The notes beneath the pieces are model-generated. The model was given only the letters and a program-made list of their open reading frames with translations, did no database searches and was not told where the DNA came from. This document shows, piece after piece, positions 1,988-4,880 of a stretch of 64,000 nt of DNA. Positions within the stretch are counted from its first letter, which is position 1. Each line of letters starts with the position of its first letter. The translations under genes and the position numbers were made by a program. The DNA is taken from sequence record OR836606.1. One strand, written 5' to 3'.

Positions 1988-2326
1988 ATGCCATATTTTG
2001 TTTTAGATCCTCGTTCTTACATGGTAATTTATCATGCAGGACTTGTTGTTAAAGGTACTATCACTTTAGATGAAGTTACTGAAATAATGGGATTAAGAAA
2101 ATACGTTATTGAAGTTTTAGAAGAAATGGGTTATAATTTCGAATCAGGTAAAATCGAAGAAACTGAAGTTTTAGAAGAAATTGATCCTATTGAAGCGGAA
2201 CATATGGTTGATGAAGCTGTAGAAGATTCAGAAGTTCAAGGGATCGGACGAGCTACAGAAGTAGACCCTCAAGAAGAAGACCTTGAAAATCCTTCATCAG
2301 CTCAAGGCGGAACTTTGCCGCATTAG
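1988..2326 (+). CDS. Small tail-module protein with acidic tail; its last codons are duplicated downstream of omegaRNA cassette 1
   Basis: AAGGAG RBS before ATG at 1988; in frame with track ORF 1940..2326; ends GGTLPH*. Confidence 0.6.
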   Translation: MPYFVLDPRSYMVIYHAGLVVKGTITLDEVTEIMGLRKYVIEVLEEMGYNFESGKIEETEVLEEIDPIEAEHMVDEAVEDSEVQGIGRATEVDPQEEDLENPSSAQGGTLPH

Positions 2327-2428
2327 TTTTAATAACGTTAAATAACATGACAATTATTAAGTTACAATAACCAAGTAACTTAAATCACAAGGGGAGGGCT
2401 GAGCCCTTAGACATATAATAGTGTCAAC

Positions 2429-2611
2429 ATGGTTATCTGATGTGAAGCGTTTATATGACTCATATATATATAAGAAGATTATAAATGAATTGATCTAAGC
2501 TAATGTATCTTAGTACAGAAACCGAAAAATCCAGTTTAAAACTGCTACAACAATTAAGTTAATTGATTTTAATTATATTGTTGTAAAATGTTTTAAACGC
2601 TATGAGATTTT
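2429..2611 (+). ncRNA. Stand-alone TnpB omegaRNA scaffold, copy 1
   Basis: Near-identical to the reverse complement of 53616-53807, which lies directly 3' of tnpB (shared ATGGTT.TCTGATGTGAAGC, GAATTGATCTAAGCTAATGT, AGTACAGAAACCGAAAAATCCAGTTTAAAACTGCTAC, TATGAGATTTT); no tnpB adjacent. Confidence 0.8.
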
Positions 2612-2774
2612 ACAGCTGGAACTTTACCTAATCAGTAATTCTTATCAACGTTAATTAAATAAAGAAAATAGAACATATTTATATGAAAGTTATTTACATA
2701 AATATCTTTCATACAATTTCTTTGTTCTTGTCTATCTTTATTCTTTTTTCTTTTAATTTTGGCAAAGTCTTCAA

Positions 2775-2812
2775 AAAGTCCCTAACATTCTTAATTGAGT
2801 GTTAGGGACTTT
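2775..2812 (+). terminator. Rho-independent terminator-like hairpin
   Basis: AAAGTCCCTAACATTC / GAGTGTTAGGGACTTT inverted repeat followed by T-rich tract. Confidence 0.7.
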
Positions 2813-2898
2813 ATTTTAACCCAGAAATTTGTAAAAAGCATCAATTCTATTAAAGAAACAAAGTTTTATAATAAAAAATAGGATGTGAAAAATAAATT

Positions 2899-3396
2899 AT
2901 GAAGGATGATAATAATAAAAACAATAATAGAGAAGATAATTTAAGTGTTGAAGAAGCAAATAGTTTAGTTATTAGATTCTATTATTTTCTTAAGCAGTTT
3001 AAATATTATATAACTCCTATTTTCTTATCTGTTTATTCTTTAGTTTATGGCTTCCAATTTGTTTTTCGAACAAGAGAAGCTTATAGAACATCAGATATTT
3101 ATGTAGCCATTTCCCATTTTATGGACTTAAGAACCTATGGTTTATTTTTAATTATTGGCGGATTATCCATATCAGCTTCACTATTCTTAGATAATTTTAT
3201 GACTAAACCTTTAATGACTATAGGTGCGTTTATTAACTTCGCTCTATTTTTAATATATGCTATTATATCTATGGATATTGCAGGTATGCAATCAACTATA
3301 ATTTTAAAAATTTTCATCTCTTTTTTAAATTTCTTCTTTGCAGTATTTACAATTCTTGAAATGAGAACGGAATCTATTATAAATGGAAGAAAATAA
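2899..3396 (+). CDS. Multi-pass membrane protein in lysis region
   Basis: 165 aa with about four hydrophobic segments, upstream of holin. Confidence 0.65.
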   Translation: MKDDNNKNNNREDNLSVEEANSLVIRFYYFLKQFKYYITPIFLSVYSLVYGFQFVFRTREAYRTSDIYVAISHFMDLRTYGLFLIIGGLSISASLFLDNFMTKPLMTIGAFINFALFLIYAIISMDIAGMQSTIILKIFISFLNFFFAVFTILEMRTESIINGRK

Positions 3397-3940
3397 TAGA
3401 AGATTGTATGAAAATAATAGATCCATAACTGAATTAGAATTACTAAAGTCAAATAATTCATTGAAAGAAGAAATTGAGGAGAAATTTGATAAAAAAATAG
3501 ATGAAGTTAAATCCGAGAGTCGAAAAATGAGTAGCACTTTAGTACGTGTAGAAGTATTACTTGAGAATATGGGTAAAAACACCGAAGAAATTAGAAAAGA
3601 AATGAAAGAAGATAGAGAAAATAGAAAAATTGAAGAAGAAGAAAGAAAAAGAAGACATTATGAATTAGAGTCACAGATACATTCTGTTAAACAGGAATTA
3701 AATCAAAATGTTGAACAAGTTGAAAGAAAAATAACTAGTGACATACAAGATTTAAGATTAGGTTTAGACAGTAAACTTAATATAGAAGACTTTGAACTTG
3801 AGTTTAAAAAAATTGAAGAAAGTTCTAATGATGAAAAAGATAGTAAAACTTTTAAAAGAAATTTATTTGTCAATGTAGTATCTTTAATATTGGCTCCTTC
3901 AGTAATCTTAGATATAATTAGAAGAATATTTGGAGGATAG
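3383..3940 (+). CDS. Coiled-coil protein with C-terminal transmembrane segment (lysis-associated)
   Basis: E/K-rich heptads, hydrophobic C-terminus LFVNVVSLILAPSVILDII. Confidence 0.6.
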   Translation: MEENNRRLYENNRSITELELLKSNNSLKEEIEEKFDKKIDEVKSESRKMSSTLVRVEVLLENMGKNTEEIRKEMKEDRENRKIEEEERKRRHYELESQIHSVKQELNQNVEQVERKITSDIQDLRLGLDSKLNIEDFELEFKKIEESSNDEKDSKTFKRNLFVNVVSLILAPSVILDIIRRIFGG

Positions 3941-3955
3941 ATTTAAATATTTATT

Positions 3956-4513
3956 TTGATAAAAAGGAGAAATGTTAAATTGAAAAAAAATTTAAAAATT
4001 GGTAAAGATAAATATATTAATGTATTACTTAGATTTAAAAATAAAGCGTGGACAGCAGCTTTATTAATTCAATTAGTCAACGTAACTATTTTCTTAATTC
4101 GTGCTTTTGGTGGAGAAGTTTCTGGTGATACTGAAACTAATATTTTAAGTATCGTACAAGTTTTAGCAGGTGTCTTATCTAGTTTAGTTGGTCGTTTTGT
4201 AGATAGTACAACTGAAGGTTTAGCTGACTCTGAACGTAACTTAGTTAAAAGTAGTCCTACTACAAATAGTGAAAAATCCCTTCAAGCAATGGACTATGAC
4301 GGTAAAATTCTCCCTCCAGTGAAGCCTTTTTTGGAGCAAGAGAGCAACCAAGAAACTACAAACTTACCAAAGGGTCTAGAAACTTTCGATAATGAATATT
4401 TAGAACATCAAGTTTTTGTGGAAGATGATGAAGGATTAATTGAATCAGTTGTTAGAGCTGATGCTAACTACAATCCTGAAATTTTAGGTGGAGGATCCGG
4501 CGGTGATCTTTAA
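3956..4513 (+). CDS. Holin, phiLC3-like family, with long acidic C-terminal tail
   Basis: LRFKNKAW...two TM segments...VDSTTEGLADS matches the RFKNK..W / DPTT.G.SDS pattern of LC3-type holins; true start may be a TTG near 3980. Confidence 0.75.
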   Translation: MIKRRNVKLKKNLKIGKDKYINVLLRFKNKAWTAALLIQLVNVTIFLIRAFGGEVSGDTETNILSIVQVLAGVLSSLVGRFVDSTTEGLADSERNLVKSSPTTNSEKSLQAMDYDGKILPPVKPFLEQESNQETTNLPKGLETFDNEYLEHQVFVEDDEGLIESVVRADANYNPEILGGGSGGDL

Positions 4514-4623
4514 CGGCAATATTTTTATTAACGTTAAATAACATAACAATTATTAAGTTATAATAACCAAGTAACTTAAATCATAAGGGCGAGCTGAGTC
4601 CTTAGGCGCATAATAGTGTCAAC

Positions 4624-4802
4624 ATGGTTCTCTGATGTGAAGCATTTATAAAGATCTTTCTATTAAATTAATAGGAATAACTTTATAAATGAATTGATCT
4701 AAGCTAATGTATCTTAGTACAGAAACCGAAAAATCCAGTTTAAAACTGCTACACAATTTTTAATTATATTGTTGTAAAATGTTTTAAACATTATGAGATT
4801 TT
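4624..4802 (+). ncRNA. Stand-alone TnpB omegaRNA scaffold, copy 2
   Basis: 5' half (ATGGTTCTCTGATG...GATCTAAGCTAATGT) identical to the IStron copy on the minus strand near 53727-53807; same TATGAGATTTT end; no tnpB adjacent. Confidence 0.82.
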
Positions 4803-4847
4803 ACAGCTGGAGGATCTGCTGAAGATCAATCAAATTAATATATTTTA

Positions 4848-4880
4848 CGGTAACATTCATTAAATTGAATGTTACCGTTT
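4848..4880 (+). terminator. Rho-independent terminator
   Basis: CGGTAACATTCA / TGAATGTTACCG 12-bp stem followed by TTTATTTT. Confidence 0.75.

Follow-up and report, generated by a model that had tools for sequence, protein, structure and literature searches.

IStrons of the IS607 family, group B, consist of a group I intron, tnpB and an omegaRNA in this order, insert after a G-ending motif from which their own end differs at position -3, and take their 3' flank as guide (CboIStron, 10.1101/2023.11.20.567912; survey PMC4227781). The C. botulinum IStron is kept from cleaving itself by a difference at position -3 between its target-adjacent motif (TAM), TGGG, and its own end, TCGG (10.1101/2023.11.20.567912). 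The guides of IS607 omegaRNAs are reported to be about 18 nucleotides (nt) long, and homing by TnpB has been shown for transposons in bacteria, whereas from phage to phage it has only been postulated (PMC13565253). Here we analyse the initial 64 kb (hereafter the window, with the same coordinates as the record) of the 258,897-bp genome of LY01 (OR836606.1), a jumbo phage of S. aureus, in which an IStron of this kind splits gyrA and two short cassettes related to it lie at the ends of two other genes, one of them encoding a holin. Each cassette is followed by what appears to be the displaced former end of the gene, and this old end has the features expected of a TnpB guide against cassette-free alleles of related phages.

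Two cassettes and the gene ends beside them

The cassettes are about 300 nt long each, 84% identical to one another, colinear throughout and share one common internal junction. They contain no conserved open reading frame (ORF), and none longer than 36 amino acids. Their 3' ~225 nt are the counterpart of the last 24 nt of the first of the two tnpB genes of the window together with the 210 nt downstream of it: cassette 1 is 82% identical to 53842-53616(-) over 232 nt and cassette 2 is 90.6% identical to 53807-53616(-) over 192 nt, an 87-nt identical run included. At the 5' end, 60-75 nt of each cassette resemble the opening ~80 nt of the gyrA IStron, exactly at the left junction of the latter (cassette 2 matches 55618-55541(-)). 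Since their right ends thus match the tnpB-adjacent scaffold and their left ends the IStron left junction, the cassettes are, to judge from these matches, internal-deletion derivatives of the gyrA IS607-type IStron in which tnpB and the ribozyme core are gone and the whole guide-RNA scaffold is left. They can be grouped with the non-autonomous omegaRNA elements in the wider sense, and the omegaRNA-type identity which the original prediction had assigned to them is borne out by their similarity to the sequence that directly follows an intact tnpB of LY01 on its 3' side. The scaffold RNAs are predicted to form stable folds (z = -3.5 for cassette 1 and -3.45 for cassette 2). Among the two cassettes, the parent and the related element of phage Machias, variation and indels fall mostly into unpaired columns of the scaffold (81 of 132, as compared to 25 of 126 paired ones), a count that is partly circular as the structure was predicted from the same four-copy alignment. 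Rfam searches yielded no match at gathering thresholds in the whole window and only noise around the cassettes at E <= 10; even at this level there was no Intron_gpI match in the cassettes, in which only ~70 nt of the left end remain. Splicing by the cassettes was rejected because the ribozyme core is absent. The cassettes fall outside the definition of an IStron, as they have neither ribozyme core nor tnpB and are flanked by diverged direct repeats, whereas IStrons are described as inserting without duplication of the target.

Two other classes of element were considered and rejected. A diversity-generating retroelement does not agree with the substitutions, which include T>C, T>G and C>G, nor with repeats of only ~20 nt; no reverse transcriptase domain was found in the neighbouring ORFs scanned. 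There is no CRISPR array, and the similarity of the terminal hairpin to CRISPR-DR50 is sub-threshold (23 bits against 47, E = 2.1, opposite strand).

The nature of the sequence to the right of the cassettes becomes apparent from nine related jumbo phages in the phage collection, namely MarsHill, Madawaska, PALS_2, S6 and UFV_DC4 (DC4; all five ~91% identical to LY01), SA1 (~80%), and AH12, PB50 and Machias (~70%). In MarsHill both genes are cassette-free, their products end with GGTLPNQ (locus 1) and GGGSAEDQSN (locus 2), and the gene ends, CAAGGTG GAACTTTACCTAATCAGTAA and TTAGGTG GAGGATCTGCTGAAGATCAATCAAATTAA, are identical to the guide-side copies of LY01 from TGGA on. Cassette-free relatives matching the guides are what the original prediction had called for as a check, and on this point it is borne out. 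At least 20 nt after the CTG of each cassette are identical to the cassette-free MarsHill allele, where they follow GGTG; as far as the alignments tell, a TnpB guide and its TAM are arranged in just this way. Guide template 2 is identical after GGTG in Madawaska and DC4 as well, and has one mismatch each in PALS_2 and S6. At locus 1, Madawaska carries GGCG, PALS_2 carries GGCG together with two target mismatches, and S6 and DC4 carry GGTG with two target mismatches. The remaining relatives (SA1, AH12, PB50 and Machias) have other gene ends of the AT type. The GGCG of Madawaska and PALS_2 and the target substitutions of PALS_2, S6 and DC4 may reflect normal sequence variation or else confer resistance to such guides. 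In the window, no second match with up to three mismatches exists for either guide. Conversely, the GGGSGGDL end of the holin occurs in LY01 only among the homologues found in a search of 5.8 billion proteins. Because the cassette-free ends of the relatives match the guide side and the live ends are so far unique, the guide-side copies are ancestral and the live ends derived, in agreement with what had been proposed from the LY01 sequence.

Comparison of occupied with empty sites at four sites of the element family places the boundaries. The target side ends with GTG and the element with CTG throughout: CAAGGTG and ACAGCTG at locus 1 (guide template starting with GAACTTTACC), TTAGGTG and ACAGCTG at locus 2 (GAGGATCTGC), GATGGTG and TTAACTG in gyrA (ATATACCG), and AAATGTG and GTAACTG in Machias versus PB50 (GATTCC). 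We infer that GTG is the TAM of this family. GTG and CTG differ at position -3 like TGGG and TCGG of the C. botulinum IStron, and the pattern equals that of the group B IStrons, which insert after xGGG and end with CGG, except that the core is TG instead of GG. The mismatch that had been noted after a shared AG is real, being the G of the TAM side against the C of the element end at -3, but the boundary is GTG/CTG rather than AG. Both insertion sites lie directly after GTG, 20-29 nt 5' of the stop codon of a late gene.

The repeats that had been quoted for the two loci are present at both. At locus 1, GGCGGAACTTTGCCGCATTAG (2306-2326) and GCTGGAACTTTACCTAATCAG (2615-2635) are identical at 15 of 21 positions, and at locus 2, GGTGGAGGATCCGGCGGTGATC (4487-4508) and GCTGGAGGATCTGCTGAAGATC (4806-4827) at 16 of 22, in both cases ungapped and in register with the cassette boundaries; for each pair, random 21- or 22-mers of the window reach such identity in ~3e-5 of trials. 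Diverged direct repeats flank both cassettes, whereas the gyrA parent is without any. The left copies form the live gene ends. In comparison with the guides they are perfect in the first 7 nt after G(T/C)G at both loci, and only these 7 nt are an unambiguous duplication. The mismatches follow at positions 8, 11, 12 and 15 of 17 at locus 1 (4/17, plus T>C at TAM position -2, giving GCG for GTG) and at positions 8, 10, 11, 13 and 14 of 18 at locus 2 (5/18). The locus 2 copy comprises 18 nt, the same length as that of the IS607 guides, ends exactly where homology to the parent left end (TTTAAC...) begins, and keeps GATC at target positions 15-18. Two further features of locus 1 were observed. The changes T>C and A>G occupy complementary positions of a small hairpin at 2306-2319 (GGTGG..TTACC to GGCGG..TTGCC), which was flagged by a terminator scan and may be coincidental. 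In the 150 nt 3' of gene 1 (window ~2640-2770), LY01 and the MarsHill group share 96-98% identity, more than in the flanking coding sequence (84-95%); this stretch holds an ORF of 40 amino acids (2683-2805) and precedes a terminator. PHROG and Pfam searches with the gene 1 product gave no informative match. The coordinates of all features are compiled in Table 1.

Table 1. Features of the two cassette loci and of the gyrA IStron in the LY01 window
Feature	Coordinates	Strand	Description
Gene 1	1988..2326	+	Small acidic protein, MarsHill_050 homologue; ends GGTLPH, ancestral GGTLPNQ (from the ORF list and the gene ends of relatives)
Locus 1 live end	2306..2326	+	GGCG (variant at TAM position), diverged target copy GAACTTTGCCGCAT, stop codon TAG in left-end-like sequence
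Cassette 1	2327..2618	+	IStron left-end remnant (~2327-2389) fused to putative omegaRNA scaffold (~2390-2618); ends CTG
Candidate guide template 1	2619..2638	+	Displaced ancestral gene 1 end GAACTTTACCTAATCAG TAA; identical to MarsHill and Madawaska, there after GG(T/C)G
Gene 2	3980..4513	+	Holin (Phage_holin_1, Pfam PF04531; PHROG holin); ends GGGSGGDL, not GGGSAEDQSN
Locus 2 live end	4487..4513	+	Intact GGTG, diverged target copy GAGGATCCGGCGGTGATC of 18 nt, then TTTAA, with which the cassette left end begins and which supplies the stop codon
Cassette 2	4509..4809	+	IStron left end (4509-~4580) fused to putative omegaRNA scaffold (~4581-4809); ends CTG
Candidate guide template 2	4810..4838	+	Displaced ancestral holin end GAGGATCTGCTGAAGATCAA TCAAATTAA; terminator of the gene follows at 4847-4878
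Parent IS607-type IStron	53608..55607	-	Splits gyrA; left end, group I core, tnpB, putative omegaRNA scaffold
Group I intron core of parent	55141-55532	-	RF00028 full-length match
tnpB of parent (first tnpB)	53824-55044	-	Pfam TnpB domains
Parent omegaRNA scaffold (putative)	~53608-53850	-	Ends CTG
Parent guide template (candidate)	53588-53607	-	Start of gyrA exon 2

The IStron in gyrA and its relatives

The parent element is a 2.0-kb insert at a site that is uninterrupted in MarsHill (GATGGTG/ATATACC). Its 5' part matches RF00028 over the full length with 29.9 bits (E = 1e-5 in a 601-nt search), which is below the Rfam gathering score of 50; conserved group I core strings are present, and the intron region resembles non-coding regions beside IS607-type genes in Listeria phage LPJP1. 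The encoded TnpB contains the Pfam domains OrfB_IS605 and Cas12f1-like_TNB and, aligned to ISDra2 TnpB (8BF8/8EXA), has kept the RuvC D/E/D residues and the zinc-finger CxxC pairs. A homologue of the IS607 serine transposase (TnpA) was found neither in the window nor anywhere in LY01 or Machias. The intron match, tnpB, the resemblance to LPJP1 and the empty site in MarsHill together identify the insert, by comparative criteria, as an IS607 (group B) IStron without tnpA, and apparently as a new member of this group with a TG core. Its likeness to the group B IStrons extends to the expectation that a copy devoid of TnpA would be maintained by TnpB. The GGTG just 5' of tnpB in LY01 and Machias was considered as a TAM carried by the element and was rejected, as it is the ribosome-binding site.

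A tnpB orthologue with 89% amino-acid identity and an irregular left junction is present in Machias. Comparison of this region (270446-274478) with PB50 shows a tnpB without intron, and the ribosome-binding site of this gene runs directly into the third codon of a lipoprotein gene; the body of the latter is deleted and its last 30 nt remain as guide template, with one mismatch to PB50. Since the left junction is irregular here too, a legitimate right junction combined with an untidy left one is, on present alignments, a trait of this element family. In LY01 itself, positions 4624-4710 of cassette 2 are perfectly identical over 87 nt to the parent right end (53807-53721(-)), yet the first hairpins of the two differ, and cassette 1 shares no more than 82% identity with the parent, a pattern suggestive of gene conversion between the cassette 2 and parent copies inside LY01.

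Several other features of the region were noted. The gyrA gene of LY01 (52796-58362(-)) harbours two selfish inserts, a LAGLIDADG-domain intein in the N-terminal part and the IStron, which sits between codons 914 and 915 (MarsHill numbering). Just 5' of the first tnpB lies a 31-nt stretch (55099-55129(-)) with ~90% complementarity to the scaffold's 3' stem (53619-53649(-)). By pairing with the right end it could place the 3' splice site next to the intron core, in competition with the omegaRNA fold; the like has been described for other IStrons. The second TnpB protein of the window (62341-63483(-); the first is encoded at 53824-55044(-)) is a member of another family; the three Pfam TnpB domains are all present in it, and its right end differs. 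This insertion is specific for LY01, being absent from all relatives, and no mini copies of it were found in the window. Finally, homologues of the IS607-type serine transposase are encoded by eight S. aureus phages of 135-142 kb in the phage collection and are absent from the jumbo phages; sharing the host species, these phages are a possible source of transposase in trans.

A candidate RNA-guided drive and competing explanations

The reading we prefer, in which we place about equal measures of belief and doubt, is that the cassettes are guide-only IStron derivatives which direct TnpB, acting in trans, to cut the cassette-free alleles of sister phages, with homing or damage to the rival as the outcome. 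One internal deletion would have removed the ribozyme core and tnpB and left ~70 nt of the left end together with the complete omegaRNA scaffold, and the resulting mini-element would then have occupied two further sites. Read-through transcription from the host late gene would give rise to an omegaRNA whose ~18-nt guide is the displaced ancestral gene end; promoter-like sites in the cassettes are not above shuffled expectation, and terminators lie downstream of the cassettes at ~2777-2817 and 4847-4878. The intact TnpB of the gyrA IStron may load these omegaRNAs in trans and, in a mixed infection, cut the GTG-flanked cassette-free alleles of co-infecting relatives (GGTG plus target, perfect in MarsHill). 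Recombinational repair from the LY01 allele via the 84-99% identical flanks would copy the cassette in, or else the cut would damage the rival. The alleles of LY01 should be safe, the guide template being preceded by CTG instead of GTG and the live ends having 4-5 mismatches from position 8 on, with a changed base in the TAM position besides at locus 1. As no IS607 TnpA was found in LY01, nuclease-driven recombination would be the only route of spread encoded by the element.

But why would a target duplication accompany the two cassettes when their parent has none? The parent splices and lacks a duplicate, both cassettes do not splice and have one, which argues that the duplicate matters as a preserver of the gene end: since the cassettes cannot splice, it is the diverged copy that keeps the C-terminus near-native. 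As to its origin, we speculate that the TAM-proximal stub of a TnpB cut (~14-18 nt) was kept and joined to the cassette left end in repair, and that later cycles of cutting and repair scarred the TAM-distal part near the junction until self-cleavage stopped. This model would explain both the length of the copies and the location of all mismatches at position 8 or beyond. It leads to a bolder proposal, which we put forward only tentatively: LY01 may carry a natural, multiplexed, split RNA-guided gene drive in which substitute gene ends systematically derive from retained TnpB-cut stubs, so that a transposase- and intron-less lineage colonises coding genes of phages without killing them. A single TnpB, housed in a self-splicing IStron, would power satellite guide cassettes in other genes, and each of these would consist, like an engineered home-and-rescue drive, of a substitute end resistant to cleavage, the guide cassette and the old end turned into the guide.

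Several observations weigh against the homing reading. In the live end of locus 2 both the TAM and target bases 1-7 are unchanged, and immunity at this locus would hence depend on the mismatches within positions 8-14. Synonymous changes do not predominate at locus 2 (Ala>Gly and Glu>Gly), and at third codon positions the left copies differ from MarsHill at 3/6 and 3/7, which does not clearly exceed the genome-wide level of LY01; for both reasons the recoding is only possibly adaptive. The original prediction had described the live copies as GC-shifted and recoded. They do differ from the guides, but the GGC at locus 1 and the Gly at the Glu codon of locus 2 are natural polymorphisms of cassette-free relatives, so that not all of the GC shift is recoding. 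Moreover, profiles of flank identity show no clear co-conversion tract, the GTG TAM rests on four sites, and the cassette family is known from two loci of one genome and one full-length relative in Machias. Accordingly restricted were the results of wider searches: blastn of the cassette family against 50,697 phage records returned only LY01 and the tnpB right end of Machias, searching IMG/VR, GTDB genomes and JGI metagenomes for exact patterns turned up nothing or chance 18-mers, and relatives of the first TnpB protein in IMG/VR and metagenomes were absent or only ~30% identical. Finally, relatives such as phage S6 are reported to have uracil-containing DNA, which may bear on the activity of TnpB in them.

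The strongest competitor holds that the cassettes are inert, decaying IStron remnants resembling miniature inverted-repeat transposable elements (MITEs), placed near gene ends by illegitimate recombination, with the duplication as a repair scar and the guide presently without function. Insertions near gene ends are tolerated; only two copies are known, in one genome, no transposase was found and there is no promoter signal above chance; and the Machias relative has a messy left junction and a deleted gene body. Identity to the MarsHill group is 98-99% in the 150 nt that adjoin each cassette on the right, and this stretch is equally conserved among the cassette-free phages. As the right flanks are thus highly conserved in all relatives anyway, the identity of the guides to MarsHill is no proof of selection. 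On the other hand, the cassettes have diverged by 16% and yet their scaffold stems are kept and indels lie in loops; both have retained an exact CTG end beside an exact TAM-adjacent target; an intact cognate TnpB persists; and the same unusual architecture is found at both loci. We consider mere decay unlikely.

Less likely still, in our estimation, is that the cassettes serve as a weapon in competition without homing, in that, during co-infection, they widen the target range of TnpB to the holin gene and gene 1 of rivals and lower the rival yield, while copying is incidental or absent. The evidence of guide and TAM is the same as for homing, and there is a precedent in an intron-encoded endonuclease that mediates interference competition between jumbo phages (PMC11620839). 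However, the long homologous flanks (84-99% identity) make copying from the LY01 allele likely once a break has occurred, and the two outcomes are not exclusive.

The last competitor, which we hold to be just as improbable as the weapon, concerns the origin of the left stretch, for which three readings beyond position 7 may be considered. The stretch could be (a) a duplicate of the target that acquired mutations afterwards, (b) the allele which the recipient phage had already had and which had diverged naturally, as supported by the GGC of locus 1 and the Gly at the Glu codon of locus 2 in cassette-free relatives and by the unremarkable third-position divergence given above, or (c) partly cassette-borne, MAFFT aligning TCCGGCGGTGATCTTTAAC of cassette 2 with the gyrA flank and left end. 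Taken further, (c) would mean that only 7-9 nt (TG+GAACTTT and TG+GAGGATC) were duplicated by microhomology or at a junction resembling a target site duplication, that the rest is left end plus former flank into which the gene runs and stops, and that the resemblance of the C-terminus is due to chance or weak selection. The alignment of TCCGGCGGTGATCTTTAACGGC in cassette 2 with gyrA flank and left end (TCAGATGGTGTTTGTTAACAG) is in line with this, as are the alignment of CTTTGCCGCATTAG in cassette 1 with CTTTAACGGCAATAT in cassette 2, which is about as good as that with the target, and the end of the perfect match after 7 nt at both loci. Against it, the in-frame Leu-Pro at locus 1 and Gly-Asp at locus 2 (as in the PALS_2/S6 allele) are jointly expected by chance at <1e-3 in a rough estimate, and the locus 2 copy ends exactly at the first left-end base after 18 nt, which is guide length, with GATC kept. 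The retention of Leu-Pro and Gly-Asp in frame and of GATC at target positions 15-18 leads us to favour (a) or (b) over (c). It had also been proposed that the cassette itself supplied a recoded C-terminus. The word recoded is fair for the outcome, and part of the stretch may be cassette-borne; the proposal of the cassette as carrier has only partial support, since the left copies are locus-specific and hence no fixed part of the mobile unit. Plain IS607-type transposition was rejected, as it would require two different left ends each matching its own target for 7 nt (joint chance ~4e-9).

Comparison with known systems

Returning to the cassettes as guide-only elements served by TnpB in trans, we find counterparts in several described systems. 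The omegaRNA-only derivatives of IS200/IS605 elements of the PATE type (Meers et al.) are reportedly short and ORF-less like the LY01 cassettes, and are said to have kept transposon ends and guide scaffold with TnpB encoded elsewhere; unlike the cassettes, they are reported to be chromosomal in bacteria and to be mobilised by TnpA. We know of neither gene rescue nor target duplication described for them. Prophages inserted in tRNA genes, as well as e14 and phage 21 in icd, bring or leave a substitute gene end with differences and displace the old one, as in LY01. They differ in using site-specific integrases and att homology, and in that the displaced fragment is not known to have a guide function.

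With respect to IStrons, what the cassettes retain is the guide RNA and what they lack is the ribozyme. The degenerate IStrons surveyed, by contrast, always keep splicing (PMC4227781), and it is by splicing that their host gene survives. In the literature on TnpB together with phage homing or competition we found no description of the present cassette architecture. If our reading is correct, selfish elements would have, in a duplicated, mismatched gene end, a third means of residing inside a coding gene, next to introns and inteins, and a single nuclease served by several guides that are encoded apart and directed against competing genomes would constitute a step towards CRISPR-like logic. As LY01, MarsHill and Madawaska are S. 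aureus jumbo phages that can be cultivated, the system lends itself to direct tests of LY01 against either of the other two.

In its course, the proposed process resembles the intronless homing of Seg/Mob endonucleases in T-even phages, in which the sister allele is cut in mixed infection, the donor is immune owing to substitutions in the site, and flanking markers are co-converted (PMC13565253). The LY01 system would differ in that recognition is RNA-guided and one protein serves several loci through separate guide cassettes. In its layout it resembles the synthetic HomeR or recoded-rescue CRISPR drives (PMC7968924), which likewise combine a target gene, a cleavage-resistant 3' end and a guide cassette with a nuclease located elsewhere (split drive). 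Those drives are engineered and carry a full synonymous recoding, whereas the LY01 arrangement is natural and the substituted stretch comprises only 14-18 nt and is imperfect. Judged by this correspondence of parts, the engineered home-and-rescue drive is the closest functional analogy to the LY01 cassettes, which, if the proposed function is real, would be its natural counterpart.

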